Source of the DNA: Leidyana gryllorum EB-2025a
Lineage: Eukaryota > Protista > Apicomplexa
Direction of reading: 5' to 3'
DNA length: 43,922 nucleotides
Assembly (NCBI GenBank): GCA_048772705.1
Contig: JBLWGC010000055.1
Location: forward strand, 1 to 43,922
Part shown: positions 3,113-43,101 of the stretch, in pieces
Numbering within the stretch: position 1 is the stretch's first letter
Layout of the letters: every line of letters starts with the position of its first letter
The notes under the pieces: generated by a model
Seen by the model: the letters and a program-made list of their open reading frames with translations, nothing else
Told to the model about the DNA's origin: nothing
The model's database searches: none
Made by a program: the position numbers and the translations under genes

Positions 3113-3294
3113 TGTAGGCCAAGTCATATATGTGTTCATGTTTGTGTCTCGGTGCCGGCCGGCCGGCCGGAACGAGACGGAGACACGGGTTTTTAGAGTG
3201 TACATAGATTCGACGAACGAACAACGAACAACGATGGTTCTACGAAGTGGCAAAGCCCTACGGACGCAAGCAGGTGGTCATGCAGATGACTACA
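3113..3294 (+). repeat. 5' LTR of A
   Basis: TGTAGGCC...GACTACA, followed by T and the PBS. Confidence 0.97.
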
Positions 3295-4355
3295 TTGGTA
3301 GCAGTGCGTCTCTAATACCAATAGACAAGACCGCGATGACCGAACCAAAACCCGGAATCGACCCGGAAACTAAGAAAGGAACGGACAGCCCAATCACAGG
3401 GGCACCGGCGGACGGCCTAACGCCGATAGAACAGATCCAGCTGATAACCCACATAGTCCGGAACGCACTCGAGGAAGAGCGGAACACCCAGCAGAAAGCC
3501 ACCAGCCACCGCCAAATCGAAGAAACCTCACAACAAGAAAGGGCGCATACGGCCCTCCGAAAACACACAACCTTCGACGGAACCGCATCAGCGCGGGATT
3601 GGCTAGACGGTTGCGCCGCCCGCTTCGTCGCTCATCGAATTACCGAACCCCAGAGCCAAACTCGAGCAGCAGCAGCCCTTCTTACCGGATCAGCGGCAAG
3701 GTGGCTGCTCACCTCCCCAACTCTGGCCGACATTGACTTCAACACCTTCCGCAAGGCATTGATAGAAGAGTTCGACACGATTCAAACAGTTCAGAACGAC
3801 CTCACCAGAATGGCAGAAATAAGCAAAACAGGGACAATGGCCCAATACGTATCCGATTTCCGCACTCTCAACCGAGGACTACCGGAGACCATAGACACTC
3901 TTACCAGAACACACTTCTTCCTCAAAGGACTGCCCCACGCGGACAAGATAGCATTAAGCCCTCACATTGGAACGGACATCAACACACTCTGCCTGAGAGC
4001 ACTTCAGTACGCAGCAAGCACAGGATCTCAGAAACGCGTGACTGAGAATGTCTTTGCCACAGCAGCCACAACAGGGGGAACAGTGGGGAAAAGATGCCGA
4101 TTCTCACACCAGGAGTGCGTGGCACAGAAGCGATGTTTCAATTGCGGGTCGGACCAGCACCTAGCCTGGAAATGCGACCAACAACGAGATGATCGACGAG
4201 CCCGCCCCCTGATAAACCACCGAAACGCCAACCGCGGATACCGAAACGTGATGGCCACGGACATAGAACCCATCGAGGATTTTACGCAACGCCCTGGACA
4301 GACGGCGCACGCTCCAGAGGCAGAGAACAGCGCCAATCACATAACGGAACTCTGA
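3234..4355 (+). CDS. gag: Gag of A (MVLRSGK start inside the LTR; CX2CX4HX4C knuckle)
   Basis: Capsid-like region (FDG..ARDWLD, LTGSAARW) and CFNCGSDQHLAWKC. ATG chosen by comparison across families. Confidence 0.9.
   Translation: MVLRSGKALRTQAGGHADDYIGSSASLIPIDKTAMTEPKPGIDPETKKGTDSPITGAPADGLTPIEQIQLITHIVRNALEEERNTQQKATSHRQIEETSQQERAHTALRKHTTFDGTASARDWLDGCAARFVAHRITEPQSQTRAAAALLTGSAARWLLTSPTLADIDFNTFRKALIEEFDTIQTVQNDLTRMAEISKTGTMAQYVSDFRTLNRGLPETIDTLTRTHFFLKGLPHADKIALSPHIGTDINTLCLRALQYAASTGSQKRVTENVFATAATTGGTVGKRCRFSHQECVAQKRCFNCGSDQHLAWKCDQQRDDRRARPLINHRNANRGYRNVMATDIEPIEDFTQRPGQTAHAPEAENSANHITEL
3296..3309 (+). promoter_or_regulatory. Primer binding site, tRNA-iMet type (TGGTAGCAGTGCGT)
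   Basis: 1 nt after the LTR CA. Same 14-mer at 17117-17130, 19550-19563, 28459-28472, 30590-30603 and 42749-42762; a 1-mismatch version at 20218-20231. Confidence 0.9.
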
Positions 4356-7300: not shown

Positions 7301-7738
7301 CTCTTGGCAACCAAGAATCTAGCACATGTACCGAAGACAAAGCTGACGAACCCCTTCTGTGGGCCTTTCAGGATCACTCGCGACTGCGGCAAGAACACCT
7401 ACCTGCTAGATCTACCGCCGACATGGGGCATACACCCCAAGTTCCACGCATCGAGACTCGAACCAATGAACAGCGAACAACTGGAAAGAGGAAGCACACC
7501 ACCAGAGGACACGGAGAATGATACTCTGTACATTATGCAGGAGATAGTCGGATGGAGAGAAGTGGAGAGTGGACTACAGTATAAAATCAAATGGGCCGGA
7601 TACAGCGACCAAACGTGGGAACCAGCAGAAGCAGTGCTCAACGCGGAAGGCGCCGACTTAATTGCCGACTTCGAAGAGAGATGGAACCGCCGGAACCCCA
7701 ATAACCCGTTCAGGCCCGGAGGAGGGGGAGGGATGTAG
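4277..7738 (+). pseudogene. pol: Pol of A (PR-RT-RNase H-IN-chromodomain) with one in-frame TGA at 5912-5914
   Basis: LVDTGAS, YLDD, TDAS, HHCC, SDRD/GLVER, GPF, YIMQEIV..KWAGY..WEP. The -1 frame is open from GGATTTT at 4277. Confidence 0.93.
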
Positions 7739-7915
7739 GCCAAGTCATATATGTGTTCATGTTTGTGTCTCGGTGCCGGCCGGCCGGCCGGAACGAGACG
7801 GAGACACGGGTTTTTAGAGTGTACATAGATTCGACGAACGAACAACGAACAACAATGGTTCTACGAAGTGGCAAAGCCCTACGGACGCAAGCAGGTGGTC
7901 ATGCAGATGACTACA
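7734..7915 (+). repeat. 3' LTR of A
   Basis: Follows the PPT GGAGGAGGGGGAGGGA. Confidence 0.97.
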
Positions 7916-7978
7916 TGGGGCAGGTAGCGAATGGGGGTCAGTTGGCTGGGATAAAAACTGCACAATGGGGAGGTGAGG

Positions 7979-8356: not shown

Positions 8357-11061
8357 TCCCTCCCTTCCAAACCTTCGTAGGCGTGGCGGGGGTTCCGGGT
8401 GTTGAAGTTCCGGCGGAAGTCGGCGATCAAGTCCTGACCGTCCGCCTCAAGTACGTATTCAGCGGGTTCCCATGAAGGGCTCTCGTATCCTCGCCACTTC
8501 ACCAGATATTTTAAACCATCCTCTGACTGTTCTTCACCGACGATCTTCTCCATTAGGTACAGTTGGGGACCTTCATCTGAGACGGGAATGAGGTTGGGGA
8601 CATCTGCAACTGGAGGGCTGATCGGGGTGTTGGGTTGTGGAGAGCGAGTAAAGGGTTCAAGCCGGGAGACATGGAACCTTGGGAAGATTCTCCAGTCGGC
8701 CGGGGTGTCTAACTCGTAAACATCACCGGGGAGTCGTTTCAAGACACGGAAGGGGCCGCAGAAAGGTAACGCCAGCTTGTGTTGGGGTACGTGCGTCAGG
8801 TGTCGGGTCCGGAGGAGGACGAGGTCGTCCTCCGCGAAGGTGATGGGTGCCCGGTGGCGGTCGGCTTGCGTTTTCATGAGCTCGCCAGCATGCCGGAGTC
8901 GGTCTCGGGCTTCTTGGAGTTTTTGGAGGTAGAGTGGGGCGTGCGGGAGTGTTGGGGTGTGGAAAGCGAGCAGATCACGAGAATGTGGGAGTGCCATGGG
9001 TCGTCCGTTGTCCAGTTCGAACGGGCTGAAGTTCGTCGACTTACTGGTGTTGGAGTTGAAAGCGATCTCTATGGCCGGAACCAAATGAGTCCACTCCTCG
9101 CGCAGACCGCTCATGGACAACTTCAAGAGCTGCAAAACCGATTGATTGGTGCGTTCAGCTAGGCCATTTGTCTGTGGATGATATGGGGTAGTGAAGGAGA
9201 GGGTAGTGCCGAGGGCTCGGAACAGGGCTTGCCACATGTTCGACATGAAACGCGTATCACGGTCCGAGATGATGCGTTGTGGGAGCCCGTGGAGTTTCAC
9301 GATGTGGTCGAGGAATAGATGGGCCGTGGTGGTGGCGTCCATGGCCTTACGGCACGGAATGAGACGGGCGCGTCGAGTGAGTCGGTCAATAACCACCATG
9401 AGGTAATTGTGACCTGTGCGGGTGTCCGTGGGCAGTTCGAGAAAGTCCATATGGACCTCGGACCAAGGGTGGAAGGGGATGTTGAGAGGGTTCAAGAGCC
9501 CGAGTGGGCGGTGGCGGCGTTGCTTACCGAGCTGGCACGTCTGACACTGTCGGCAGAACTGGGCGATGTCGTTCATCATCCCCGGCCAGACAAATGTCGC
9601 TCGGATTCGGTTGGCTGTCTTCTGTGGTCCATAGTGCCCCGCGATCAGCGTCGAGTGGGCTTCCTTGATGATGTCCGCGACAATGGAGGGTTCCAAAGGG
9701 ACCTCACACTGACCTTCTTCGGTTATGGGTAGGGAGTCGATCCAAACGATCGGACCACAGGCGCCGGCGCGGTCTTTTTGAGAACGCCAGGCTTGAATCA
9801 ATCGTCGGTGTATTGGTGGGATGCATTCGTGGTTTCGCGGTGAGGAGGGGAAGTTGTTTATGGGATTTCGATTTTTTTGCAGCGTTTCTGTTGAAGCTGG
9901 CGGTAGCGCGTTGTCGGGGGCGTCTGGGGCTGTTGTACGGTCAGTGGTCGGTTCCTCGTCGGTATTGATCAGCGGGTTCGCAGAGAGCGTGAAAACGGCA
10001 GCGGATGTCGTACGGTTGTGTGACAGCGGGTCTGCGGGCGTATCTGCGGTCGGCGGTCGGCTCAGGATGTCGGCGATGACATTCTCGCAGCCCTTGATGT
10101 ATTCGAATTCCAGGTGATATTCGGCGAGAGTAAGTAACCACCTAGCTTGTCTATCAGAGATGTGGGACTGCTTCATCAGGTAGATGAGTGGTTTGTGGTC
10201 TGTGTGAACCGTCACTCGTCGTCCCACGAGTAAATGGCGCCAGTGCCGCACGGCGAACACCACCGCGAGTAGTTCGCGTTCGTGCGTGGGGTATCTTTGT
10301 TCTACATCGGTAAGTGCATGAGAGTAGAAGTCCACTGGTTTCTCCCCTCCCTCTTCATATGAGAGTGTAGCGCCTATGGCTCGGGCGCTAGCGTCAGTGT
10401 GAAGGTGGAGGTGGGTTGCTGTGAGGGGTATGTATCCCAGGGTTTTTGCGGTGAGTAATTGAGTCTTCAGGGTGTTCCATGCTGTATATAGGCTATCGGT
10501 TGTGGCTATAGGTGCTTTGGGGAATTGGAGGCCTTTCATTGCGTCGTAAAGAGGGACCGCAATTTCCGCAAAGTGGGGGATGAACCGGCGGTAGTAATTT
10601 ACCAGTCCGAGCCTACTTTGCATTTCGCGCAGGTTCGTTGGAAGTGGTAGGTTCTGGATGGTTGTGCATTTCGCCTTCAGTGGTCGTACCCCTTCGGCTG
10701 AAATGGTGTGTCCGACATAGTCTACTTCGCGAAGGAAGAAGCGTGACTTGCGGCGGTGAACAATGAGCTGATGAGAGTTGAGCCGTCGGAAGACTTCGAT
10801 AAGATGCTGTCGGTGTGCGTTGAGGTCAGGACTGTAGATGAGAACGTCGTCGAGATAAACAAAAACATATTCGCCGATGAGGTCTCGGAAGACGAGGTTC
10901 ATAAGCGCCATGAAGGTTGCCGGGGCGTTGCAGAGGCCATTGGGCATGCTGACCCATTCGTACAAGCCCCATGGAGTGGTGAAAGCGGTGAGCGGGCGGC
11001 TATCGGGGTGGACGCGTACTTGATGGAATCCGCTTTTTAGGTCTAATGTACTGAAGATCTG
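8263..11061 (-). pseudogene. pol: Pol of C, 5'-truncated (partial RT, RH, IN, chromodomain)
   Basis: Begins at QIFSTLDLKSG next to a B LTR; YLDD, TDAS, HHCC, GPF, KWRGY. The ORF runs about 31 codons into the 3' LTR. Confidence 0.92.
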
Positions 11062-11275
11062 TGTGATCGGGGGCCTTGGCGTTACTCTCCGAGCTGGTAA
11101 GTACTTTGCCACTCCTTAAATCCATTGTTGTTTCCTTAGCGTCACGTAAGTAAAAAAGTTCCACACGCGTGTGTCCGTGTCTCCGTTGATTGCCGGCCGG
11201 CCTCCGGAGACACAGACTTACCTTGGTTGACCGGCTTCGGTCGGCTTCCGTCAAACGACCAGTTGATCGGTTACA
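11062..11275 (-). repeat. B-family LTR with no PBS or PPT and mismatched flanks
   Basis: 214 bp, 2 differences from the other three B LTRs; left flank is C RT, right flank is B1 integrase. Confidence 0.93.
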
Positions 11276-12451
11276 ACAAATAGGTAGTTCATTCCGGTGT
11301 CCATGTCCTCCGGTAGTTCCAAGAAATCGATCCCTATGTGCTGCCATGGAAATATGGGGTCATCAATGGGGTTTAGAAGTCCCGCGGGTCTGCCGTTCCG
11401 CTTCTTGCTTTTCTGACATATTTCGCATATTCTGCAAAAATGTGCTATGTCGGCACTCATTCCGTGCCACACGAATACGGCCCTTATCCTCCCTAGCGTC
11501 TTTTCGCTACCAAAGTGTCCGGCCAGGTGTGTTGAGTGGTTCTCCCTGATGATTTCTTGGATGAGGTCTCGATCGGGTGGGATAACAATGCATCCATCAC
11601 TTGTGACTGGAATTCCTTCCAGCCATTCCGTGTTGTCCCATTGGTTCGCAATCTCTTCCTTTCCCTTCCACGCGTCTTTGATGCGCTGCTCGAGGCTTGA
11701 TTGTGCCGTGATCGTCATCCACGTCTCTGGTGTGAGGTCCTTTTTTGGTGGTGGTCTGCTTAACAAATCCGCAACTATGTTGTTGATTCCTGGCAGATAG
11801 TGTATTTGGATATCGAATTCTGAGAGTGTTGTTATCCATCTGATCTGTCGGTCAGTCAGATGTACTTGGTCCATGAGGAAGGTAAGCGGCTTATGGTCTG
11901 TCTTGATTCTTGTTCGTCTTCCTATCAGCAGATGCCGCCAGTGCTTCAGTGCTTGTATGATGGCCAGTAGCTCTCTTTCGTACGTTGAGTATCTTTGTTC
12001 GGCTGGCTTCAGTGTCCTCGAGTAGAACTCGATCGGCTTCATGGATCCGTCTTCCATTTCTTCCTCCAGGACCGCTCCTATCGCTGTCGCTGATGCGTCA
12101 GTCTTCAAGGTGAGTTCGTCCTTCTTCGGGTCCGGATAGCCCAGTTCCGGAGACGACAGTAAGTCCTTTTTTAGGTGGCTCCACGCCTCCTCAAGTTCCG
12201 CAGTGGGTGCAATCTCGTCCTTCGGTCCGTGGTTGCCCTTCAGACAGTCGTATAGGGGTGTTGCTGTTTTGGCGAAGTTCTTGATGAACCGCCGATAGAA
12301 ATTGAAAATTCCCAACCCTCGTTGCATCCCTCTATGGGTTTGTGGTCGTGGTAATTCCTCGATAAACTTCATCTTCTCCTGGATGGGTCTGATGCCCTGG
12401 GCGCTGACGTGATGTCCGACGTATGTGACCTCGGTCTGGTAAAACTTAGAC
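11276..12451 (-). pseudogene. pol: B1 pol, 3' fragment (end of RT, RNase H, N-terminal IN)
   Basis: Near-identical to 13742-14917; ends at YLFV, against the LTR. Confidence 0.92.
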
Positions 12452-12660
12452 TGTGATCGGGGGCCTTGGCGTTACTCTCCGAGCTGGTAAGTACTTTGCC
12501 ATTCCTTAAATCCATTGTTGTTTCCTTAGCGTCACGTAAGTAAAAAGGTTCCACACGCGTGTGTCCGTGTCTCCGTTGATTGCCGGCCGGCCTCCGGAGA
12601 CACAGACTTACCTTGGTTGACCGGCTTCGGTCGGCTTCCGTCAAACGACCAGTTGATCGG

Positions 12661-15600
12661 TTACACCCCTCCCGGGGCGGCCTCTTGTTGTGGTCTAACG
12701 TCTAGGTAAGGTGTGCGGGGGTTCTGTTCGTTGTATCTCCTTTTGAAATCCTGTATTAGGTCGAGTCCGTCTGCTCTCAAGACCTCCGACTCTGGTTCCC
12801 AGGTGATGTCGTTGTAACCTCTCCATTTGATCCTATAGTAAGTGCCATTTGAATCGGTCTTCTCTCCTACTATTTGTTCCATTATGTACAGTTGTGCCTC
12901 GGGAATCTGTGGAAGTGTTTCATTAGGTGGTTGCTCTTGTCTCCTGTCATCGGTCGGTGCGGTATTTGGGGAGTTATTTCTTGCTTCGTTTGTCTTGAAG
13001 CTATGTAGTCTGGAGACGTGGAAGGTATCGAAGATTCGCCAGTGTTGGGGTAATGCGAGAGTGTATGTATCGTGGGTTCCCTTCCGAATGATCTCAAATG
13101 GTCCTATGTACGGATTGGCTAGCTTATGTTGTGGTATATGTCTTATGTTCTTTGCGTTCAGTAGGACTAGTTCTCCTACTTCGAATGTTCGCTGCTGTCG
13201 GGATCTGTCGTTTGCTTTCTTTTGTCTCTCCTTCGCTTGCGTCAACCGATCGTGGGCTTCTTGAAGCCGCTGGTAGTAGAGTGAAAGTGTCCTATTTCCG
13301 CTCGGTATGTATTGATGTGTTAGCCAATCCTGTTCAAAGTGCGCTCTTCGTCCCGTATCCACTTCCATCGGTGACATTCCCGTTGAGGTTTGTGGTGTCG
13401 AGTTGTAGGCTATCTCAACCGCTGCCGTGTACATGGTCCACTGGTGTCCGACTCCTTGAAGAGTACATCGTAGGATCTGTAAGATAGTTCGATTTGCCCG
13501 TTCTACTAAGCCATTCGTCTGCGGGTGATTTGATGTACTCATTGCCAGGTTTATCCCTAACTGGCTCATCATTGCGGTCCAGAAATCCGAGATGAACCTG
13601 GGGTCTCGATCCGAGATTATTTTGCACGGCAGTCCGTGTATTCGGACTATATTCTGGATGAAGAGTGTGGCGGTTTCCGCGGCCGTGATCGTCTTTCTGC
13701 ATGGGGTCAGTCGAATTCTCCTGCTAACTCTGTCCACCACTACAAATAGGTAGTTCATTCCGGTGTCCATGTCCTCCGGTAGTTCCAAGAAATCGATCCC
13801 TATGTGCTGCCATGGAAATATGGGGTCATCAATGGGGTTTAGAAGTCCCGCGGGTCTGCCGTTCCGCTTCTTGCTTTTCTGACATATTTCGCATATTCTG
13901 CAAAAATGTGCTATGTCGGCACTCATTCCGTGCCACACGAATACGGCCCTTATCCTCCCTAGCGTCTTTTCGCTACCAAAGTGTCCGGCCAGGTGTGTTG
14001 AGTGGTTCTCCCTGATGATTTCTTGGATGAGGTCTCGATCGGGTGGGATAACAATGCATCCATCACTTGTGACTGGAATTCCTTCCAGCCATTCCGTGTT
14101 GTCCCATTGGTTCGCAATCTCTTCCTTTCCCTTCCACGCGTCTTTGATGCGCTGCTCGAGGCTTGATTGTGCCGTGATCGTCATCCACGTCTCTGGTGTG
14201 AGGTCCTTTTTTGGTGGTGGTCTGCTTAACAAATCCGCAACTATGTTGTTGATTCCTGGCAGATAGTGTATTTGGATATCGAATTCTGAGAGTGTTGTTA
14301 TCCATCTGATCTGTCGGTCAGTCAGATGTACTTGGTCCATGAGGAAGGTAAGCGGCTTATGGTCTGTCTTGATTCTTGTTCGTCTTCCTATCAGCAGATG
14401 CCGCCAGTGCTTCAGTGCTTGTATGATGGCCAGTAGCTCTCTTTCGTACGTTGAGTATCTTTGTTCGGCTGGCTTCAGTGTCCTCGAGTAGAACTCGATC
14501 GGCTTCATGGATCCGTCTTCCATTTCTTCCTCCAGGACCGCTCCTATCGCTGTCGCTGATGCGTCAGTCTTCAAGGTGAGTTCGTCCTTCTTCGGGTCCG
14601 GATAGCCCAGTTCCGGAGACGACAGTAAGTCCTTTTTTAGGTGGCTCCACGCCTTCTCAAGTTCCGCAGTGGGTGCAATCTCGTCCTTCGGTCCGTGGTT
14701 GCCCTTCAGACAGTCGTATAGGGGTGTTGCTGTTTTGGCGAAGTTCTTGATGAACCGCCGATAGAAATTGAAAATTCCCAACCCTCGTTGCATCCCTCTA
14801 TGGGTTTGTGGTCGTGGTAATTCCTCGATAAACTTCATCTTCTCCTGGATGGGTCTGATGCCCTGGGCGCTGACGTGATGTCCGACGTATGTGACCTCGG
14901 TCTGGTAAAACTTAGACTTTCTCCGGTGTGCTATGAGTCCGTGTTCTCCCAGTCGTTCTAAGACCCGTCTCAAGTGTTCCGTGTGTTCCACCGTCGATTT
15001 GGAGTATATTAGCACATCGTCGAGATAGACGAAAACGAAGACTCCTATCAATCCTTGCAGAACTTGATTCATGAGTGCCATGAATGTGGACGGGGCATTC
15101 GCTAGACCATTTGGCATCCCGACCCACTCGAACTGTCCCCATGGTGTCGAGAATGCCGTATACTTTCTGCTCCCGGGTTCCACGCAAACCTGGAAATATC
15201 CGGATTTCAAATCTATAATCGAGAAGACTGTCGCTCCCGCAAGGTTCTGAAGCCCATCCTCCATCCTAGGGATGTTTGGTGCGAGTCGTCTGGTCAGGGC
15301 ATTTATGCCTCTGTAATCGCAGACTAAACGTGGGATGTTCGTGTCCTTCTTCGCCACGAACATGCACGGTGCGGACCATTCTGACCCACTTGGTACGATC
15401 AATCCGTTCCCCAACATCTCTCCTATCTGTGTTCTCATCTCGTCTAGCCATTTCTGTGGTATTCTATAAGGTTGCTTCGCCACTGGAGTGCTGTTCGGTT
15501 CCTTCAATTCTATTTTGTGATCTATTCCCCGTCTTGAAATAGGCTGATGCAGGGTGTCACGAAATACGTGGGAGTATTTTTGCCTTATCCACTCCGCCTG

Positions 15601-16137
15601 AGGTGGTAAGACCCACGCTTCTTGTACCGGTGCTGTCCCTTTCTGCAGTTGTATTAGCATTGCCGTTGCTCGTTTCCCTCCGTTGGCCGGGTTCCAGTTC
15701 CATTGATGTAATTTGATCTTTCCATTCAAGGTAAGTTGGTGCCCTTGTATTATACATAACCGTTCAGCTCGAGCTGCAATGCACAGATTGAGGCGTGCTA
15801 TCTCCCTGGTCCCTATCAGTATGTCGTAGTGTAGCGATGCTACCACGAACGGTCTAGCTTCTATTGTCGTTGTTCCTGTATCAAGGATGAGTTTTGATGC
15901 CTGTCCTAGTATTTTCTCGGTGCCTCCTATGCCTTCCAACTCTGGTCCCCCTTCCGTCATGGACAGTTTCAGTTTCCTTCTTGTTCCGTTTGATATCAGA
16001 CATATGTTTGATCCTGTATCGACGAGCACGCATGCTCGGCTCCTGGTTCGTTCGTCGTCCGGATTAAGTATCCACCATTGAGCTGTCAGAACCCCGGGGC
16101 CGGTTCGCTCGTGTCCGACGGGGGTTCCTGAAAATCC
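12661..16137 (-). CDS. pol: Pol of B2 (PR-RT-RH-IN-chromodomain), intact
   Basis: LVDTGS, YLDD, TDAS, HHCC, SDRD, GPF, KWRGY. Open from the slippery site 16137-16131; stop TAA lies in the LTR terminus. Confidence 0.95.
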   Translation of the reverse strand, partial: GFSGTPVGHERTGPGVLTAQWWILNPDDERTRSRACVLVDTGSNICLISNGTRRKLKLSMTEGGPELEGIGGTEKILGQASKLILDTGTTTIEARPFVVASLHYDILIGTREIARLNLCIAARAERLCIIQGHQLTLNGKIKLHQWNWNPANGGKRATAMLIQLQKGTAPVQEAWVLPPQAEWIRQKYSHVFRDTLHQPISRRGIDHKIELKEPNSTPVAKQPYRIPQKWLDEMRTQIGEMLGNGLIVPSGSEWSAPCMFVAKKDTNIPRLVCDYRGINALTRRLAPNIPRMEDGLQNLAGATVFSIIDLKSGYFQVCVEPGSRKYTAFSTPWGQFEWVGMPNGLANAPSTFMALMNQVLQGLIGVFVFVYLDDVLIYSKSTVEHTEHLRRVLERLGEHGLIAHRRKSKFYQTEVTYVGHHVSAQGIRPIQEKMKFIEELPRPQTHRGMQRGLGIFNFYRRFIKNFAKTATPLYDCLKGNHGPKDEIAPTAELEKAWSHLKKDLLSSPELGYPDPKKDELTLKTDASATAIGAVLEEEMEDGSMKPIEFYSRTLKPAEQRYSTYERELLAIIQALKHWRHLLIGRRTRIKTDHKPLTFLMDQVHLTDRQIRWITTLSEFDIQIHYLPGINNIVADLLSRPPPKKDLTPETWMTITAQSSLEQRIKDAWKGKEEIANQWDNTEWLEGIPVTSDGCIVIPPDRDLIQEIIRENHSTHLAGHFGSEKTLGRIRAVFVWHGMSADIAHFCRICEICQKSKKRNGRPAGLLNPIDDPIFPWQHIGIDFLELPEDMDTGMNYLFVVVDRVSRRIRLTPCRKTITAAETATLFIQNIVRIHGLPCKIISDRDPRFISDFWTAMMSQLGINLAMSTSNHPQTNGLVERANRTILQILRCTLQGVGHQWTMYTAAVEIAYNSTPQTSTGMSPMEVDTGRRAHFEQDWLTHQYIPSGNRTLSLYYQRLQEAHDRLTQAKERQKKANDRSRQQRTFEVGELVLLNAKNIRHIPQHKLANPYIGPFEIIRKGTHDTYTLALPQHWRIFDTFHVSRLHSFKTNEARNNSPNTAPTDDRRQEQPPNETLPQIPEAQLYIMEQIVGEKTDSNGTYYRIKWRGYNDITWEPESEVLRADGLDLIQDFKRRYNEQNPRTPYLDVRPQQEAAPGGV

Positions 16138-17195
16138 TGCTCCGTGAGGTAGGTGCGTGCCCTATTCCTTGCTGGGTAGTTCCCATTCTGACTCGGTTTG
16201 TCCTCTCGTGGCAGAGGGCAATCCCTCCCCATGTGTCCTTTCTCGCCGCAGTTCAAGCAGCGGCCTTCTGCCATGCATCGGCTGAAGTCGTATTGGCATC
16301 TCTTCCCCGTGTTCCGGTTCCCTCTGTTTATCCTTCCTTCAATTGCATATGATCTGTTCTGCGTTGCGGCTTCCTTCGCGACTGCCTCCACTTCTAGTGC
16401 CGCTATGCAGATTTCGTCCAGTGATCGGCCGTTGATGCCTCCAAGCATTCTTCTGTCCTCCGCAGGTAGTCCGTCATAAAAGATTCTGGTCAGTGTGGAT
16501 TGCCGTACCCCGCGGTCGATTCCTCGCGTCAGTTGCCGCGTCTTATTCACGTACGTCATCATTGATCCGGTCTTTCGGAGGTGTACCAGTTCCAACAAGT
16601 CATCGTGTTCTCCTCTAAGTGGCCCAAATTCATCGAGGAATGTCTGTTTAAACTTCGTCCAGCTATAACTCAGGACCTGTGGTTTGGATGCGAACCAGCG
16701 GCTTGCTGTTCCGGTCAGTAGTGCGCAGGTCGCCCTGATTCGATCTTCGTCGTTCTGAATGTCCCAGGCTAGGAACTTGGTGTGGCATCCGTCCAGCCAG
16801 TCCCTGGCGTTTGCGTCCGTGCTTCCATCGAATCCTTCCTGCTTCTTCAGGGCCCAGGCCGCTTGGCTTCGTCCCTCGTCGGCCTTGGGTACTTTTGGTT
16901 GTCTAAGCTGTGTCATTCTATCCGTTATCGTTCCTTGTTTCTGGATTTGTTGGATGTTGTCCGTGGCCTTCCGCAAGTCCTGTGCTAGTCTTTCGAGTTG
17001 ATCTATCACTGTCAAGTGCGGCTCTGTGCTTTCCGTTCTTTCGCTTTCCTGTTCCGTTCCCAGGTGGGCCTCTTGCAATTCTTCGTCCGTGGGTGGCTGA
17101 TCGGCGTCTGCGTTGTACGCACTGCTACCAGTGTGATCGGGGGCCTTGGCGTTACTCTCCGAGCTGGTAAGTACTTTGCCATTCCTTAAATCCAT
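16086..17195 (-). CDS. gag: Gag of B2 (MDLRNGK start in the LTR)
   Basis: CLNCGEKGHMGRDC knuckle; capsid-like region. Confidence 0.9.
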   Translation of the reverse strand: MDLRNGKVLTSSESNAKAPDHTGSSAYNADADQPPTDEELQEAHLGTEQESERTESTEPHLTVIDQLERLAQDLRKATDNIQQIQKQGTITDRMTQLRQPKVPKADEGRSQAAWALKKQEGFDGSTDANARDWLDGCHTKFLAWDIQNDEDRIRATCALLTGTASRWFASKPQVLSYSWTKFKQTFLDEFGPLRGEHDDLLELVHLRKTGSMMTYVNKTRQLTRGIDRGVRQSTLTRIFYDGLPAEDRRMLGGINGRSLDEICIAALEVEAVAKEAATQNRSYAIEGRINRGNRNTGKRCQYDFSRCMAEGRCLNCGEKGHMGRDCPLPREDKPSQNGNYPARNRARTYLTEQDFQEPPSDTSEPAPGF

Positions 17196-17345
17196 TGTTG
17201 TTTCCTTAGCGTCACGTAAGTAAAAAGGTTCCACACGCGTGTGTCCGTGTCTCCGTTGATTGCCGGCCGGCCTCCGGAGACACAGACTTACCTTGGTTGA
17301 CCGGCTTCGGTCGGCTTCCGTCAAACGACCAGTTGATCGGTTACA

Positions 17346-18570
17346 TAGACTTTCTCCGGTGTGCTATGAGTCCGTGTTCTCCCAGTCGTTCTAAGACCCG
17401 TCTCAAGTGTTCCGTGTGTTCCACCGTCGATTTGGAGTATATTAGCACATCGTCGAGATAGACGAAAACGAAGACTCCTATCAATTCTTGCAGAACTTGA
17501 TTCATGAGTGCCATGAATGTGGACGGGGCATTCGCTAGACCATTTGGCATCCCGACCCACTCGAACTGTCCCCATGGTGTCGAGAATGCCGTATACTTTC
17601 TGCTCCCGGGTTCCACGCAAACCTGGAAATATCCGGATTTCAAATCTATAATCGAGAAGACTGTCGCTCCGGCAAGGTTCTGAAGCCCATCCTCCATCCT
17701 AGGGATGTTTGGTGCGAGTCGTCTGGTCAGGGCATTTATGCCTCTGTAATCGCAGACTAAACGTGGGATGTTCGTGTCCTTCTTCGCCACGAACATGCAC
17801 GGTGCGGACCATTCTGACCCACTTGGTACGATCAATCCGTTCCCCAACATCTCTCCTATCTGTGTTCTCATCTCGTCTAGCCATTTCTGTGGTATTCTAT
17901 AAGGTTGCTTCGCCACTGGAGTGCTGTTCGGTTCCTTCAATTCTATTTTGTGATCTATTCCCCGTCTTGAAATAGGCTGATGCAGGGTGTCACGAAATAC
18001 GTGGGAGTATTTTTGCCTTATCCACTCCGCCTGAGGTGGTAAGACCCACGCTTCTTGTACCGGTGCTGTCCCTTTCTGCAGTTGTATTAGCATTGCCGTT
18101 GCTCGTTTCCCTCCGTTGGCCGGGTTCCAGTTCCATTGATGTAATTTGATCTTTCCATTCAAGGTAAGTTGGTGCCCTTGTATTATACATAACCGTTCAG
18201 CTCGAGCTGCAATGCACAGATTGAGGCGTGCTATCTCCCTGGTCCCTATCAGTATGTCGTAGTGTAGCGATGCTACCACGAACGGTCTAGCTTCTATTGT
18301 CGTTGTTCCTGTATCAAGGATGAGTTTTGATGCCTGTCCTAGTATTTTCTCGGTGCCTCCTATGCCTTCCAACTCTGGTCCCCCTTCCGTCATGGACAGT
18401 TTCAGTTTCCTTCTTGTTCCGTTTGATATCAGACATATGTTTGATCCTGTATCGACGAGCACGCATGCTCGGCTCCTGGTTCGTTCGTCGTCCGGATTAA
18501 GTATCCACCATTGAGCTGTCAGAACCCCGGGGCCGGTTCGCTCGTGTCCGACGGGGGTTCCTGAAAATCC
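17346..18570 (-). pseudogene. pol: B1 pol, 5' fragment (PR and most of RT)
   Basis: Near-identical to B2 pol; broken at HRRKS by B2. Confidence 0.92.
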
Positions 18571-19628
18571 TGCTCCGTGAGGTAGGTGCGTGCCCTATTC
18601 CTTGCTGGGTAGTTCCCATTCTGACTCGGTTTGTCCTCTCGTGGCAGAGGGCAATCCCTCCCCATGTGTCCTTTCTCGCCGCAGTTCAAGCAGCGGCCTT
18701 CTGCCATGCATCGGCTGAAGTCGTATTGGCATCTCTTCCCCGTGTTCCGGTTCCCTCTGTTTATCCTTCCTTCAATTGCATATGATCTGTTCTGCGTTGC
18801 GGCTTCCTTCGCGACTGCCTCCACTTCTAGTGCCGCTATGCAGATTTCGTCCAGTGATCGGCCGTTGATGCCTCCAAGCATTCTTCTGTCCTCCGCAGGT
18901 AGTCCGTCATAAAAGATTCTGGTCAGTGTGGATTGCCGTACCCCGCGGTCGATTCCTCGCGTCAGTTGCCGCGTCTTATTCACGTACGTCATCATTGATC
19001 CGGTCTTTCGGAGGTGTACCAGTTCCAACAAGTCATCGTGTTCTCCTCTAAGTGGCCCAAATTCATCGAGGAATGTCTGTTTAAACTTCGTCCAGCTATA
19101 ACTCAGGACCTGTGGTTTGGATGCGAACCAGCGGCTTGCTGTTCCGGTCAGTAGTGCGCAGGTCGCCCTGATTCGATCTTCGTCGTTCTGAATGTCCCAG
19201 GCTAGGAACTTGGTGTGGCATCCGTCCAGCCAGTCCCTGGCGTTTGCGTCCGTGCTTCCATCGAATCCTTCCTGCTTCTTCAGGGCCCAGGCCGCTTGGC
19301 TTCGTCCCTCGTCGGCCTTGGGTACTTTTGGTTGTCTAAGCTGTGTCATTCTATCCGTTATCGTTCCTTGTTTCTGGATTTGTTGGATGTTGTCCGTGGC
19401 CTTCCGCAAGTCCTGTGCTAGTCTTTCGAGTTGATCTATCACTGTCAAGTGCGGCTCTGTGCTTTCCGTTCTTTCGCTTTCCTGTTCCGTTCCCAGGTGG
19501 GCCTCTTGCAATTCTTCGTCCGTGGGTGGCTGATCGGCGTCTGCGTTGTACGCACTGCTACCAGTGTGATCGGGGGCCTTGGCGTTACTCTCCGAGCTGG
19601 TAAGTACTTTGCCATTCCTTAAATCCAT
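18519..19628 (-). CDS. gag: Gag of B1
   Basis: Same protein as B2 Gag. Confidence 0.9.
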   Translation of the reverse strand: MDLRNGKVLTSSESNAKAPDHTGSSAYNADADQPPTDEELQEAHLGTEQESERTESTEPHLTVIDQLERLAQDLRKATDNIQQIQKQGTITDRMTQLRQPKVPKADEGRSQAAWALKKQEGFDGSTDANARDWLDGCHTKFLAWDIQNDEDRIRATCALLTGTASRWFASKPQVLSYSWTKFKQTFLDEFGPLRGEHDDLLELVHLRKTGSMMTYVNKTRQLTRGIDRGVRQSTLTRIFYDGLPAEDRRMLGGINGRSLDEICIAALEVEAVAKEAATQNRSYAIEGRINRGNRNTGKRCQYDFSRCMAEGRCLNCGEKGHMGRDCPLPREDKPSQNGNYPARNRARTYLTEQDFQEPPSDTSEPAPGF

Positions 19629-19778
19629 TGTTGTTTCCTTAGCGTCACGTAAGTAAAAAGGTTCCACACGCGTGTGTCCGTGTCTCCGTTGATTGCCGGC
19701 CGGCCTCCGGAGACACAGACTTACCTTGGTTGACCGGCTTCGGTCGGCTTCCGTCAAACGACCAGTTGATCGGTTACA
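19565..19778 (-). repeat. 5' LTR of B1
   Basis: 214 bp, followed by the PBS at 19550-19563. Confidence 0.96.
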
Positions 19779-27000: not shown

Positions 27001-27477
27001 ACTCGACATTCCACGTTCCCACCCGTCCAGCTGGCTGGGTGTCGTCGTCGTTCGTACCATACCTTCTTTCAGATAAAGTCGTCTCCGATCGTTGGTTCCA
27101 ATCTGGAGTCCCAGTTGTGCTATCAGCGGTGTCGGTAAGATCAGGTCGTAGGGTATCCCTTCGAGTATTGCCGCTTGGGTCGTCACTTCTTGTCCTCCAC
27201 TAGTTTGGATGGTGACGCATGTTAGTCGTTTCTCATCCGTTGCATGGACGGAGGCAATCCGCACCGTGTCTTTCAGCGCCTGTAGTCCGATGCGTTCCGC
27301 AGCGACGTTGTTGATGCATGTGATGGATGCTCCCGTGTCGATTAAGACTTTCGCCGCGCATCTGAGGTTTCTGTTGAGTGGGTTTATAATCCACCATTGG
27401 ATGATTAATGTGTCTTCGGCGTAGCCTCCCCCTGATTGGACGTCTCGGCCATTGACATCTGGGGCACTTGAAAACCC
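24067..27477 (-). pseudogene. pol: Pol of G, open but with a damaged RNase H
   Basis: LIDTGAS lies upstream of the listed ORF start; YLDD. DAS has become HAS, and the ~12-aa segment containing TDHK is missing (WRHLL-PLTYLL). Confidence 0.88.
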
Positions 27478-28537
27478 CGAATTTCCGTGGCGAACACTTT
27501 GTTAGCTGGTTCCTGCTCCTGTTTCTATGGTTGGATGGTCTCTTATCGTCTCGTGGCTGTTTGCACTTCCATGCAATGTGGTCATTAGCTCCGCAGTTGA
27601 AACACCTCCTTTGTGCTACGCATTCGGCATGCGTGAATTGACAGCGGCGTCCCACTCGTCCTTCGCCTTCCGTTCTCGTGGCAAGCACGTGTATCGTGTT
27701 CCTTTTGTTGTTTGTCTCGGTCGCCGCTCCGTATTGTAGCGCTCTGGAACAGAGTGTGTCTATATCTGCTCCTACATGAGCTGCTAGTGCCATTCGGTCT
27801 GTCATTGGCAAGCCTCTGAGGAAAAAGTTCGTTCTTGTTGTATTGCTGACGGTGTCCGGGATCCCAATGTTGAGTCCTTTGAATGCTAAGACATATTCAG
27901 CCATGCTGCCTGTTTTTGTGATGGACGCCATCCGTGTTAGGTCATCTTCCACGGTTGCCATTGTGTCGAATTGGTTCTTGAGCTGTGCTTCTAAGTTATT
28001 CCACGTACCGCAGAGTACTTCTGGGTTCACCGTGAGCCAACGGGCCGCCACTCCGGTGAGCAGTGAACATGTTGCGCGGACTCTTGAGTGATCGTCGGTC
28101 ACATTGAACGTAAGAAATCGCGCCTTACAGCCGTCCAGCCAATCCCTCACCGATCCAGATCCATCGAAGCGCTCATGCTTCTTCAGCGCTACTGCCCCCG
28201 GGTTTTGTTCGCTCCATGGTGCTAATGCGGTTCTGTCATACTCCTGCGTCCTCGCTTTTGCTTGATCTTTTGGTTGTTGGTTCACCACAGCCTTGATCAT
28301 TTCAGCGACAGCCAATAGCTGCTCCATCGTAGTCATCGCCTCTCCAGTAGTAGGGCTATCCGCTGCTGTGTCGTACTTCTTGTTGGTCACTGTTGGCTGT
28401 TCCGGTTCTGCTGTTTCGTGTGTTGGCTCTAGTAAGTTCAGGCTGTGATGTGGAGGAAACGCACTGCTACCAATGTAGTCCTTGCCTAAACTACCTGCAG
28501 ATGGTCTGCTGATCGCTTTGCCACTCCGTAAGTCCAT
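27405..28537 (-). pseudogene. gag: Gag of G (MDLRSGK), frameshifted near the C-terminus
   Basis: Knuckle CFNCGANDHIAWKC; the homologous ending KVFATEIRGFQ is in a different frame from the main ORF. Confidence 0.85.
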
Positions 28538-30431: not shown

Positions 30432-30536
30432 TGTAGGCCGGCAAAGGCTGGAAACGGCTAATTGGGACTAGACAACTATGAAGGTTTTTCATTGCACGCA
30501 TACGACACAAACAGAACAGGGGGACAGAGATTCCGA

Positions 30537-31627
30537 ATGGGAGTTAGTCTACGTAGCGGTACTCGCGCTAACCGGCCGACCGGTTACACTGGTAGCAGTG
30601 CGTCCCCTACTAATCACCACGCCACCTCACGAGAGAACGATATGCTGAACGACACCAGCATAGACAACGCGAACACGAAGGGGCCGCACGGGACCCTGAC
30701 ACCACCAACGGAGGCAGTACGACAGGCAGACCTACAGTCGCTTCTCAGAATGCTTAGCCAGATAATCCAGCCACCGCCGCAATCCGCACCCACCAATACC
30801 GACCGACAGGACTACGGCGACGATCACAAACAGCAGAGAGCTCAGCAAGCTCTCAAGAAACATCATCCCTTCAGTGGGACGCCCGGCTCCCGAGGACGAG
30901 ACTGGATAGATAGCTGCGCCGCGAAGTTCCTGAAGCGCACGACGTGGCGGATGACCAATCAAAGGTTCGTGCCGCCTGCGGACTACTCACCGATTCCGCG
31001 GCAAGATGGCTGCTGGCCAAACCCAACCTGGTCAACGCGACGTGGAGCGACTTCACCCGCCAACTCATTCAAGAGTTTGACACAATCCACACAATCGAAG
31101 ATGATCTGGCACGGCTGACAAACCTCACAAAGACCGACAGCATGGAATCATACGTCTCTACCTTCCGAACACTCAACAGAGGCATTCCAACCGAAATTCC
31201 GCAGAGTACCAGGACAAACCTATTCTTCCGTGGGCTTCCGACGAGTGACAAAATGGCACTGGCCCAGTACATCGGCGCCGACATCGACACTATCTGCCAA
31301 CGAGCCCTGCAGTACGCCACCGCGGTGGGCCAGGTCAAAAGAATGCCCCCAGAACAATGCTTTGCCCTCGCACGACCGGCGGGACGTGTGGGAAGGAGAT
31401 GCCAATACTCATACGATCAGTGCGTTCGGGACCGTCGCTGTTTCAACTGCGGGGCTGCGGACCACCCTGCTTGGCGGTGCAACTACCCACGAGACGACAA
31501 ACGCGGAGCCAAGATGGCGAGAACGGAGTCCGGAAATATCACGGGAGGAGCGCGGCGAGTATTTGCACTGGACGAACAGGATTTTCAGAGTGGCCCAGGG
31601 CCAAACGAGAAGACCCTGGGCGACTAG
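30537..31627 (+). pseudogene. gag: Gag of D1 with a +2 frameshift at ~30932
   Basis: TTCCTGAAGCG in D1 versus TTCCTAGCG in D2. Confidence 0.9.
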
Positions 31628-37161: not shown

Positions 37162-38124
37162 CGCTCCTCCATCATGAATACGCGTCGGCGGGGTGTTTGC
37201 TGTGTGTAGTTATCCACTCGTCCAAATTTGTTGTTCCTGCGGTCATCCCGCGGGTACCTGCAGCGCCAGGCTGAGTGGTCCTCTGCTCCACAATTGAAAC
37301 AGCGCTTTTCCCGTATACATTGCTCGTACGTATATTTGCATCGTTTCCCCACTCGCCCGGTTCCATTCGTTATACTAAAACAGTGTTGGTTGGTGGGCGC
37401 TGCTCTCTTGACTCTCCCTATGGCTGTTTCGTACTGCAATGCGCGTGTGCATAGCGTGTCGAGATCACATCCCACGAATTGAGCCAGAGCCATGCGGTCT
37501 GCCGCCGGAAGTCCTCGGAAGAACAGGTTTGTTCTGGTGCTGTCGGCTATGCAGTCGGGCACTCCTCTGTTGAGCGCTCGGAACTGATTGACGTATGTGG
37601 CCATAGAGTCCGTTTTCGATAAGGTTGTGAGCCGCACTAAGTCGTCTTCCAGAGTCTCCGCTGTATCGAATTCCTGAATTATCGCTCGGCTGAATTCTTC
37701 CCAGCTCGCCTGTTTGATGGCCGGCCTGCTCAGTAGCCAGCGAGCAGCTGAATGAGTGAGAAGTCCGCATGCGGTATTCACTTTGTATCGGTCTTCTGTA
37801 ACGTCATGTGCCAAGAACTTGGCCGAACAACTGTCTATCCAATCCCGCCCCCCAATCTTGGTTGTCCCGTCGAAGCTATCGTGCTTCCTCAATGCCAGCT
37901 CCGCCCTTCTTTGTTGGTCTGGCGGGTGTGACACCTCACCTCCGTTCGCCTGTGCCGACGTCGCTGTCGTCAGGAAGAGTCTGAGTGTATCCCAGAGGGC
38001 TTGAATGGGGACATTGCCCGTAAGTGCTTCTGTCGGCGGTGTCAAGGTCCCTTGCGGACCTTTCGTTGCTTCCATGCCTGTGCCGCTCGGCATGTCGTTT
38101 GTTTCGTTCGGTGGGGACGCACTG
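37104..38124 (-). pseudogene. gag: Gag of H, separated from its start (42921-42975, MDLRSRR) by D2
   Basis: Removing D2 and one TSD gives MDLRSRRIPPTGAYTGSSASPPNETNDMPSG in frame; knuckle CFNCGAEDHSAWRC. Confidence 0.88.
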
Positions 38125-38301
38125 TGTAACCGGTCGGCCGGTTAGCGCGAGTACCGCTACGTAGACTAACTCCCATTCGGAATCTCTGTCCCCCTGTTCT
38201 GTTTGTGTCGTATGCGTGCAATGAAAAACCTTCATAGTTGTCTAGTCCCAATTAGCCGTTTCCAGCCTTTGCCGGCCTACACCCCTCCCCCCTCTGTCTT
38301 T

Positions 38302-41775: not shown

Positions 41776-42815
41776 TGTTCGTCCAGTGCAAATACTCGCC
41801 GCGCTCCTCCCGTGATATTTCCGGACTCCGTTCTCGCCATCTTGGCTCCGCGTTTGTCGTCTCGTGGGTAGTTGCACCGCCAAGCAGGGTGGTCCGCAGC
41901 CCCGCAGTTGAAACAGCGACGGTCCCGAACGCACTGATCGTATGAGTATTGGCATCTCCTTCCCACACGTCCCGCCGGTCGTGCGAGGGCAAAGCATTGT
42001 TCTGGGGGCATTCTTTTGACCTGGCCCACCGCGGTGGCGTACTGCAGGGCTCGTTGGCAGATAGTGTCGATGTCGGCGCCGATGTACTGGGCCAGTGCCA
42101 TTTTGTCACTCGTCGGAAGCCCACGGAAGAATAGGTTTGTCCTGGTACTCTGCGGAATTTCGGTTGGAATGCCTCTGTTGAGTGTTCGGAAGGTAGAGAC
42201 GTATGATTCCATGCTGTGGGTCTTTGTGAGGTTTGTCAGCCGTGCCAGATCATCTTCGATTGTGTGGATTGTGTCAAACTCTTGAATGAGTTGGCGGGTG
42301 AAGTCGCTCCACGTCGCGTTGACCAGGTTGGGTTTGGCCAGCAGCCATCTTGCCGCGGAATCGGTGAGTAGTCCGCAGGCGGCACGAACCTTTGATTGGT
42401 CATCCGCCACGTCGTGCGCTAGGAACTTCGCGGCGCAGCTATCTATCCAGTCTCGTCCTCGGGAGCCGGGCGTCCCACTGAAGGGATGATGTTTCTTGAG
42501 AGCTTGCTGAGCTCTCTGCTGTTTGTGATCGTCGCCGTAGTCCTGTCGGTCGGTATTGGTGGGTGCGGATTGCGGCGGTGGCTGGATTATCTGGCTAAGC
42601 ATTCTGAGAAGCGACTGTAGGTCTGCCTGTCGTACTGCCTCCGTTGGTGGTGTCAGGGTCCCGTGCGGCCCCTTCGTGTTCGCGTTGTCTATGCTGGTGT
42701 CGTTCAGCATATCGTTCTCTCGTGAGGTGGCGTGGTGATTAGTAGGGGACGCACTGCTACCAGTGTAACCGGTCGGCCGGTTAGCGCGAGTACCGCTACG
42801 TAGACTAACTCCCAT
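41727..42815 (-). CDS. gag: Gag of D2 (MGVSLRSG start in the LTR), intact
   Basis: Uninterrupted ORF; knuckle CFNCGAADHPAWRC. Confidence 0.92.
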   Translation of the reverse strand: MGVSLRSGTRANRPTGYTGSSASPTNHHATSRENDMLNDTSIDNANTKGPHGTLTPPTEAVRQADLQSLLRMLSQIIQPPPQSAPTNTDRQDYGDDHKQQRAQQALKKHHPFSGTPGSRGRDWIDSCAAKFLAHDVADDQSKVRAACGLLTDSAARWLLAKPNLVNATWSDFTRQLIQEFDTIHTIEDDLARLTNLTKTHSMESYVSTFRTLNRGIPTEIPQSTRTNLFFRGLPTSDKMALAQYIGADIDTICQRALQYATAVGQVKRMPPEQCFALARPAGRVGRRCQYSYDQCVRDRRCFNCGAADHPAWRCNYPRDDKRGAKMARTESGNITGGARRVFALDEQDFQSGPGPNEKTLGD

Positions 42816-43101
42816 TCGGAATCTCTGTCCCCCTGTTCTGTTTGTGTCGTATGCGTGCAATGAAAAACCTTCATAGTTGTCTAGTCCCAATTAGCCGTTT
42901 CCAGCCTTTGCCGGCCTACACACTGCTACCAGTGTAAGCCCCCGTAGGGGGAATGCGACGGCTGCGTAGGTCCATTTTTGGTTCTGTTCCCAGTTCGGGT
43001 TCTGTCCTCCTCTCTGTTTGTAGCTACTGTCATGCACGCTCGAAAAACCTATGCTTTTGTGTGTCCCACACATGTTTGGCTCTTCGGCTTAGCCTGCTAC
43101 A

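Follow-up and report, generated by a model that had tools for sequence, protein, structure and literature searches.

An arginine-centred, LTR-encoded N-terminal peptide of Gag in chromoviruses of Leidyana gryllorum resembles nucleosome acidic-patch anchors

About 40 divergent Gag families in a single genome, that of the apicomplexan Leidyana gryllorum EB-2025a, share an Arg-centred N-terminal tip, on which purifying selection acts at the peptide level and in which one Arg is strictly invariant. Judging from its sequence, we regard the chances as evenly balanced that the tip is an acidic-patch anchor of the LANA/IL-33 type, predicted to bind from the end of a flexible arm of ~110 residues. The window, that is the whole stretch of DNA analysed, is contig JBLWGC010000055.1 of assembly GCA_048772705.1, positions 1–43,922 of the forward strand. 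Its elements are Ty3/gypsy chromoviruses with LTRs (long terminal repeats) of 160–216 nt. They are bounded by TG...CA LTRs, as seen from LTR pairs and ends; they carry a tRNA primer binding site (PBS) that is complementary to the host initiator tRNA-Met; and they match Pfam models for a Gag capsid, protease, reverse transcriptase (RT), RNase H, and an integrase with the C-terminal chromodomain that the initial annotation had noted. The features of the window, with families labeled A to H, are as follows.

3113–3294, forward strand: 5' LTR of A (TGT...ACA), with the Gag ATG 61 nt before the LTR end; the LTR pair is 3109–3298 and 7730–7919
3234–3254, forward strand: Gag motif of A, translated as M-V-L-R-S-G-K, with Arg codon CGA
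3296–3308, forward strand: PBS of A (13 nt), the complement of the host initiator tRNA-Met 3' end, in frame G-S-S-A
3234–4355, forward strand: Gag ORF of A, 373 aa, with Ty3_capsid and Retrotrans_gag matches
7855–7875, forward strand: 3' LTR copy of the ATG and motif of A
16086–17195, reverse strand: Gag ORF of B copy 1, 369 aa with a CCHC knuckle, starting MDLRNGK at 17195; PBS at 17118–17130
18519–19628, reverse strand: Gag ORF of B copy 2, starting MDLRNGK at 19628; PBS at 19551–19563
11105–11125, reverse strand: MDLRSGK of B copy 3 (B3), the Ser variant; the ORF departs from the family sequence ahead of the PBS and is truncated
12661–16029, reverse strand: Pol of B, with RT, RNase H, integrase, and the C-terminal chromodomain, the proposed second tether
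27233–28537, reverse strand: Gag ORF of G, 434 aa, starting MDLRSGK, with Arg codon CGG; PBS at 28460–28472
30537–30560, forward strand: M-G-V-S-L-R-S-G of D copy 1; PBS at 30590–30602; the Gag ORF is broken after 193 aa
41727–42815, reverse strand: Gag ORF of D copy 2, 362 aa, starting MGVSLRSG; PBS at 42750–42762
42955–42975, reverse strand: MDLRSRR of H; PBS at 42920–42931; intact relative L037
21516–21542, forward strand: M-T-V-T-T-R-S-K-K of E/F, in the LTR; the ORF stops after 40 codons
20255–20272, reverse strand: MTAKAK of C, the sole start without Arg

All nine start sites given in the initial annotation (A, three in B, G, two in D, H, and E/F) translate as it had claimed, and family C, which it had singled out as the exception, does start without Arg; this family has a single internal copy in the assembly. 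The ATGs of A, B, G, and D copy 2 open unbroken ORFs of 362–434 aa with Ty3_capsid, Retrotrans_gag, or zf-CCHC matches. Truncated Gags in the window belong to D copy 1 (193 aa), H, B3, and the E/F copy (40 codons); that of H is cut short because D copy 2 sits inserted inside the H PBS. Intact relatives of H (L037) and of E/F (L080) are encoded elsewhere in the genome, the latter being 363 aa and reading through a PBS variant. Comparisons across families were made with a set of 28 intact Gag families that have a median identity of 33%, plus 14 further N-termini from variant-PBS sites.

The predicted Gag ATG lies within the 5' LTR, 41–75 nt from the LTR end in families with an exact 13-nt PBS, and in family A the 5' and 3' LTR copies diverge at the LTR end, showing that the start codon is encoded by the LTR. 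From this ATG the Gag frame crosses the LTR terminus and the initiator-tRNA PBS, reading G-Y-T/I-G-S-S-A, and then runs through an acidic, predicted-unstructured stretch of ~100 residues before it reaches the capsid domain, which is of the Ty3 type, and the zinc knuckle. The G-Y-T/I-G-S-S-A block owes its conservation to being the LTR end and PBS translated in frame, and its presence as a second conserved block corrects the earlier description of the N-termini as otherwise unalignable. All 28 families keep an open frame that starts at the ATG, spans the PBS, and enters Gag, and it is always the same one of the two stop-free frames; no downstream start is conserved, the next in-frame Met falling anywhere from residue 12 to residue 214, and most families have no other ATG between the LTR T-run and the Gag ATG. 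The LTR ATG is the only consistent Gag start, and translation would begin there if that start is used. Since the PBS then forms part of the coding sequence, annealing of the tRNA and translation must be in competition on one RNA. The layout is like that of the copia-type element Ty1 of Saccharomyces, in which the Gag ORF also starts within the 5' LTR, in U5, and the PBS lies inside the coding region; we know of no acidic-patch motif reported for Ty1.

The anchor Arg never varies among the 28 intact families, where it forms one of only 11 invariant columns of the Gag alignment, and it is present in all 14 further N-termini, in line with the earlier claim of a motif at the Gag N-terminus common to deeply divergent families. 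Most tips fit [M/L/V]-x-L-R-[S/N]-G-[K/R], and the rest read T-R-S or K-R-S/T. Of the 28 families of our own set, 22 have a strict form of the motif, [MLVIT]-x-L-R-[SN]-[GRKS], among their first 16 residues; none of 133 foreign Gag relatives and none of 551 internal 16-residue windows of our own Gags has it. Exact M-x-L-R-S-G occurs in A, B3, and G as well as in L009, L017, and L043, and most other families are one conservative change away from it (S to N, G to R/K, or M to L/V). Counting from the Arg, 23 of 28 families have M, L, or V at −3, among them families whose motif lies 4–6 residues inside the start, and the residue equivalent to LANA M6 is the initiator Met in 17 of 28. Position +1 is S in 15 families, N in 11, and T in 2; position +3 is K in 11 and R in 7. 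Asp is the commonest second residue (10 of 28 families).

A comparison of conservation at the protein and DNA levels, as the initial annotation had suggested, reveals codon turnover that favors selection at the protein level. The anchor Arg is encoded by six codons among the 28 families (CGA 11, CGC 8, CGT 3, AGA 3, AGG 2, and CGG 1), with 0.29 bit of information at the third codon position versus 2.0 bits at the second; Ser at +1 is encoded by AGY as well as TCN, and synonymous turnover is seen at every motif codon. Between 10 and 24 codons, depending on the family, separate the Arg from the PBS. The six Arg codons, the two Ser codon types, and the varying spacing indicate that selection acts on the peptide and not on a DNA or RNA element. 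The notion that conservation reflects a U5 element that serves, for instance, in priming, packaging, integrase binding, or the initiation of translation, the peptide being incidental or untranslated, is thereby close to refuted. It has in its favor that the region lies in U5 near the PBS, where retroelements hold cis-acting signals, and that the adjoining G-Y-T/I-G-S-S-A block is conserved at the DNA level; however, turnover throughout the motif, including CGN/AGR and AGY/TCN changes, the variable spacing, the frame that is open in every family, and the shortage of alternative start codons, downstream or upstream, all argue against it. Lys is never found at the anchor position, even though one transition would turn AGR into AAR, whereas +3 swaps K and R freely. 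A fixed Arg combined with a free choice of K or R at +3 is the pattern that would be expected of an anchor pocket rather than of a generic basic signal.

The closest known counterparts are KSHV LANA (residues 5–13) and IL-33, whose core M-x-L-R-S-G is identical in several of our families (PMC8750818, PMC9040877), and the literature agrees with the earlier statement that MXLRSG is a motif shared by IL-33 and LANA (PMC8750818). The invariant Arg, the hydrophobic residue at −3, Leu at −1, Ser at +1, and Gly at +2 are in common, and LANA resembles the Gags studied here in carrying the motif near its N-terminus in an unstructured stretch. Whereas LANA is an episome tether of a herpesvirus and IL-33 a cytokine of mammals, the putative anchor described here is carried by the capsid protein of a protist LTR retrotransposon, is LTR-encoded, and often has Asn in place of Ser. 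The precedents named in the initial annotation hold for LANA M6/L8/R9, for prototype foamy virus (PFV) Gag Y537/L539/R540, and for HCMV IE1 M483/R486, the only residues confirmed there of its proposed IE1 peptide MVTRSK (PMC9040877). PFV Gag, with arginine anchor R540, is likewise the Gag of a reverse-transcribing element with a short Leu-Arg acidic-patch peptide (PMC9040877); however, its motif is Y-x-L-R-P-R in a C-terminal Gly-Arg box, whereas the present peptide forms the extreme N-terminus, before the capsid domain. The C-terminus of the present Gags is a CCHC knuckle instead of the GR boxes, of which GR box II holds the anchor in the foamy virus chromatin-binding sequence (CBS). As the PFV motif and the present tip have no sequence homology, a likeness between them would have to come from convergence. 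Tips of the E/F type (V-T-T-R-S-K-K) look similar to M-V-T-R-S-K as the initial annotation gives it for IE1, but the motif of IE1 is located C-terminally and belongs to a folded viral regulator; the co-fold described below covers the LRSG-type tip of G.

Word-indexed protein searches, a method that requires shared 5-mers so that a blank result says little, returned no match at E ≤ 0.001 for Gag B and no candidate for residues 1–40 of Gag G. A solved-structure search with a 25-residue tip gave only chance matches to designed repeat proteins and missed LANA, as expected at such a length. The motif is wholly absent from the nearest foreign relatives, in which Gag begins 5 nt past the PBS. One relative (L076) came from a public run.

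If the tip is an acidic-patch anchor, the Gag Arg would insert into the H2A–H2B acidic patch of host nucleosomes in the manner of LANA R9 and IL-33 MXLRSG, positions −3 and −1, with their hydrophobic residues, would stand in for LANA M6 and L8, and Ser or Asn at +1 could supply a hydrogen bond. Ser stands beside the anchor Arg in five of six solved acidic-patch peptides (PMC10606924). Gag-coated particles or preintegration complexes would thereby be held on chromatin, for which the CBS of PFV Gag is a precedent (PMC9040877), and the integrase chromodomain would then pick the local site. The predicted fold of Gag G has no secondary structure up to residue 69, with pLDDT of 40–54 over the block of residues 1–70, and its capsid domain exceeds 90. 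Host H2A (L068) retains the acidic residues of LEY, AELLE, and DEE, and host H2B (L067) retains PGE and NEG, so that by comparison with the human sequences the acidic-patch residues are kept. Points against the anchor are family C, which starts without the Arg, the lack of the motif in the nearest foreign relatives, the more basic tips of several families, and the use in 17 of 28 families of the initiator Met, which may be processed or acetylated, in the place of LANA M6.

We co-folded residues 1–40 of Gag G with host H2A (22–125) and H2B (28–123) in three runs with three controls. The ipSAE values were 0.54, 0.55, and 0.53 versus 0.00 for the best control, graded as "weak support" by the tool, and memory of the LANA–nucleosome complex may contribute to them; the runs have no fewer than 26% of contacts in common, and the pLDDT of the partner is 35 or higher. 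Of 78 solved complexes, 51 gained the "weak support" mark, as did 2 of 108 mismatched pairs. Values of 0.60 or below, however, account for only 5 of those 78 complexes but for all 4 of the mismatches that passed (of 180), and the tool rates such scores as wrong more often than right unless the guess was already likely.

The main rival explanation, which we hold to be unlikely, is that the tip is a nuclear import signal. In Tf1 of Schizosaccharomyces pombe, a chromovirus of the same superfamily, the first ten residues of Gag, basic in character, are critical for nuclear import and transposition (PMC7175516). Basic residues are found in every tip of our set, and K/R-rich tips occur in some families (MHLRSKKQR, MVKRTKRS, MPPKRTKRS, and the E/F lineage, in which a PKKLTKK-like cluster follows); Gag of the nearest foreign relatives likewise opens with a basic pair (e.g., MAPRRDEE and MPPRREED). 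The tip charge averages +1.7, however, with 16 of 28 families at 0 or +1, and in LRSG-type tips it is 0 to +2, with Asp as the most frequent second residue. By inspection, LRSG-type tips lack the K-K/R-x-K/R core of a classical monopartite nuclear localization signal (NLS), which is arguably present in a minority (MHLRSKKQR, MVKRTKRS, and the second E/F cluster). Unlike in Tf1, most tips are of low charge and Leu-Arg-Ser/Asn-Gly in form, and their flanking Leu, Ser/Asn, and Gly residues and the exclusion of Lys at the anchor are unneeded by an importin-α signal. In the E/F lineage the basic cluster is separate from TRS, so the two look like distinct elements. The caveat in the initial annotation that such motifs could be NLS-like therefore identifies a real rival, given the Tf1 precedent, but one that fits the LRSG-type families poorly.

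As what is established is selection at the protein level, the peptide might instead contact its own acidic linker or another acidic partner, or act in N-terminal processing or turnover or in particle assembly, roles that we consider distinctly improbable. The linker behind the tip has a mean net charge of −4.9, and a basic tip could fold back onto it; Met-Asp, Met-Glu, and Met-Asn starts, which are typical substrates of N-terminal acetylation, would suit processing. Neither the L-R-S/N-G pattern nor the exact MXLRSG match is predicted by such ideas, and the form of the motif is unchanged where it lies 4–6 residues inside the protein, which speaks against a function that depends on a free N-terminus. 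We rejected Ser as a phospho-acceptor because Asn takes its place in 11 families, and N-myristoylation of the MG start of family D on the known sequence preference of that modification.

A few viral proteins, one retroviral Gag among them, are known to tether to the acidic patch by an arginine anchor (PMC9040877), and our literature searches found no report of such tethering for LTR retrotransposons. We propose, tentatively and at slightly less than even confidence, that this clade independently reached the herpesvirus and cytokine hexapeptide, encoded it in the LTR, and placed it on a capsid arm, with Gag as a general tether beside a mark-reading chromodomain; this would be the first arginine-anchor tether of an LTR retrotransposon. 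A Gag tether as the cause of dense nesting is speculation, and since an acidic-patch anchor fits any nucleosome and confers no site specificity, nesting is not explained by the anchor alone; the ordinary explanations lie in the chromodomain and, the genome being compact, in selection against insertions. If the peptide binds, Gag-mediated chromatin docking would be older and wider than retroviruses, and MXLRSG would be a clean case of convergence in three unrelated settings. The ~40 natural variants would then amount to a ready mutational scan of the tolerance of an acidic-patch anchor, with S or N accepted at +1, K or R at +3, and M, L, or V at −3, and the Arg never replaced.

Nested Ty3/gypsy chromoviruses are stacked over the 43.9-kb contig, and long ORFs in the window match Pfam models for Ty3_capsid/Retrotrans_gag, zinc knuckle, aspartyl protease, RT, RNase H, integrase, and C-terminal chromodomain. 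The LTRs are very short (160–216 nt, with ends TGT...ACA). The initial annotation had proposed that Gag in these divergent families begins with an MxLRSG-like peptide, and our translations of the nine claimed Gag start sites are identical to those it gave; family C, which it named as the exception, does start with MTAKAK. Families A, B, and G and the second D copy (D2) have an unbroken Gag ORF of 362–434 aa from this ATG; D1, H, B3, and the copy of E/F are cut short in the window but have intact relatives elsewhere in the genome (15.5 Mb, 237 contigs).

Every element has its Gag ATG within the 5' LTR; the 3' LTR carries this ATG and the motif a second time, and the two copies diverge only at the LTR end. 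Downstream of the ATG, the Gag frame continues across the LTR terminus (...ACA), a single spacer base, and a 13-nt primer-binding site (PBS) exactly complementary to the 3' end of the host initiator tRNA-Met plus CCA. The corresponding positions in the window are:

3283–3308, LTR terminus and PBS read in the Gag frame
17118–17140, equivalent region
28460–28482, equivalent region
30580–30602, equivalent region
42750–42772, equivalent region

Read in frame, this region gives a second conserved N-terminal block, G-Y-T/I-G-S-S-A, which is conserved at the DNA level because it is encoded by the LTR terminus and PBS. One of the three PBS frames has a stop, and of the two open frames intact elements always use the same one. 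Because the Gag ORF passes through the PBS, ribosomes and the annealing tRNA must compete for one and the same piece of RNA. The Gag of H ends right after the PBS-encoded residues because D2 inserted in the PBS of H (42920–42935 and 38119–38124), with a 5-bp target duplication, CACTG.

The LTRs also share an architecture, seen at 3140–3195 (LTR of A) and in the same region of 28 families, that includes a GC-rich hairpin GTGTCTCCG ... CCGGCCGG ... CGGAGACAC, often a CACGTG palindrome, then a T-run 16–71 nt upstream of the Gag ATG, and finally an A/C-rich leader, all of them candidate promoter or R-region signals. Between T-run and Gag ATG most families have no further ATG, the ATG-to-PBS stretch is open in every family, and the next in-frame Met falls anywhere from residue 12 to 214, a position that is not conserved. 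Transcription presumably crosses the LTR ATG. The 15.5-Mb genome has about 193 copies and near-copies of the initiator tRNA-Met gene that primes the elements (loci L001–L004; assembly contig C5 and many others); they lie in dense arrays with 10–15 tRNA genes, in both orientations, every 3 kb.

A genome search for the exact PBS gave 61 sites, against none for a reversed control. Upstream sequences retrieved for all 61 sites comprised 46 distinct sequences, and the sites gave 28 Gag families that are no more than 80% identical to one another and whose intact ORF, 300 aa or longer, starts at the LTR ATG and crosses the PBS. In pairwise comparison the families have a median identity of 33%, and only 11 alignment columns are invariant, including the motif Arg (one column) and the PBS-encoded GSSA (four). 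The strict motif, [MLVIT]-x-L-R-[SN]-[GRKS] within the first 16 residues, is present in 22 of the 28 families; none of 133 foreign Gag relatives has it, nor do any of 551 windows from the interior of the same proteins; the consensus tip is [M/L/V]-x-L-R-[S/N]-G-[K/R]. PBS variants outside the first search pattern yielded 14 more N-termini, all with an Arg within the first ten residues, three with the strict motif and nine with a loose [L/T/K]-R-[S/N/T] motif (tips include TTRSKK, TTRSG, and KRTKRS). Behind its TRS tip, the E/F lineage (positions 1576–1700 of L080, an intact relative; also L082, L090, L091, L101, L102, and L109) has a second conserved block, S-I/V-L/I-P-K/R-x-L/F-T/A followed by K/R-rich residues, that looks like a separate basic signal.

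The conservation of the tip might reflect a DNA or RNA element, as the initial annotation had itself considered, but this explanation is nearly excluded. All six Arg codons occur at the invariant position among the 28 families (0.29 bit of information at the third position versus 2.0 bits at the second), Leu is encoded by TTA, CTA, CTT, and CTG, Ser by both AGY and TCN, and Gly by all four codons. The Arg, at residues 4 to 10 of Gag, is separated from the PBS by 10 to 24 codons. This codon turnover and variable spacing point to conservation as a peptide.

Because the invariant Arg is never Lys, though Lys is one transition from AGR codons and position +3 swaps K (11 families) and R (seven) freely, position +1 from it alternates among Ser, Asn, and Thr, all able to hydrogen-bond, and position −3 is hydrophobic even where the motif is displaced inward, the pattern points to specific recognition of Arg rather than generic basic charge. 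A phospho-acceptor role of the +1 Ser was ruled out by Asn at the same position. Mean net charge is only +1.7 for the tip and −4.9 for the acidic linker of ~100 residues that follows it. AlphaFold2 on the family alignment gave no secondary structure up to residue 69 (block pLDDT 40–54 over residues 1–70) and a capsid domain with pLDDT above 90; because residues 1–70 are thus modeled as unstructured ahead of the capsid domain, the motif is predicted to be at the end of a flexible arm on Gag.

LANA has the same MXLRSG core as IL-33. In IL-33 this is the essential chromatin-binding motif (PMC8750818), and contacts are made by M6, R7, L8, and the anchor R9 in LANA, M483 and R486 in IE1, and Y537, L539, and R540 in PFV Gag (PMC9040877), precedents that the initial annotation had cited correctly. 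Five of six solved peptides have a Ser next to the anchor Arg (PMC10606924). Host H2A and H2B both keep the acidic-patch residues, and co-folding of their histone-fold parts with residues 1–40 of Gag G gave scores of 0.54, 0.55, and 0.53 versus 0.00 for the best of three controls (tool grade "weak support"; at least 26% of contacts agree between runs; partner pLDDT at least 35). In calibration, 51 of 78 solved complexes reached the mark versus 2 of 108 mismatched pairs; scores at 0.60 or under were given by only 5 of the 78 solved complexes, yet by all four mismatches that passed (of 180). The pass may be memory of the solved LANA complex, and we let it raise our estimate slightly without counting it as evidence of binding.

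We give roughly even chances to the Gag tip being a LANA/IL-33-like arginine anchor and putative chromatin tether, which, if true, would be a new form of a known kind of tether. The strongest rival, though a clearly less probable one, is a nuclear import signal, a role that the first ten residues of Tf1 Gag have (PMC7175516) and that would suit the K/R clusters of some families but fits the LRSG-type majority poorly; some other, unspecified peptide-level role is less probable still. The acidic-patch proposal is partly supported: the N-terminal position of the motif and its conservation as a peptide hold, and nucleosome binding itself is predicted from sequence likeness and the 0.54 co-fold. 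The suggestion that such an anchor helps to explain the dense nesting does not follow, because it would bind any nucleosome, without site preference.

A profile search of 1.84 billion representatives returned 13,975 Gag relatives. Among the matches listed (700 aa or less), a single one of 134 inspected has this layout: P0003 (public run), which starts with MTRTLRSS and shows the same PBS read-through. The next-nearest foreign group among these matches, seen in a public-run contig encoding P0008 (L077, 1–300), has nearly the same initiator-tRNA PBS (12/13 nt), but its Gag begins 5 nt downstream of the PBS with a tip of MAPRRDEE type, so the LTR-internal start appears specific to the present clade. 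A quick Gag tree with midpoint rooting places this foreign group between two clades of the present genome and puts LR[S/N] tips in three or more places, across path lengths above 2.5 substitutions per site; the tip would therefore either be old and have been lost by the foreign group or have arisen repeatedly, and the tree does not decide between these.

Family B (11061–19780) consists of four stacked LTRs with three internal regions between them, one full and the other two partly deleted; this is a tandem LTR-internal-LTR layout and not simple nesting. At the left contig end, 474–1700 is a tandem repeat array with an 11-nt period, and the 131 nt at either end of the contig match each other at 97% identity.
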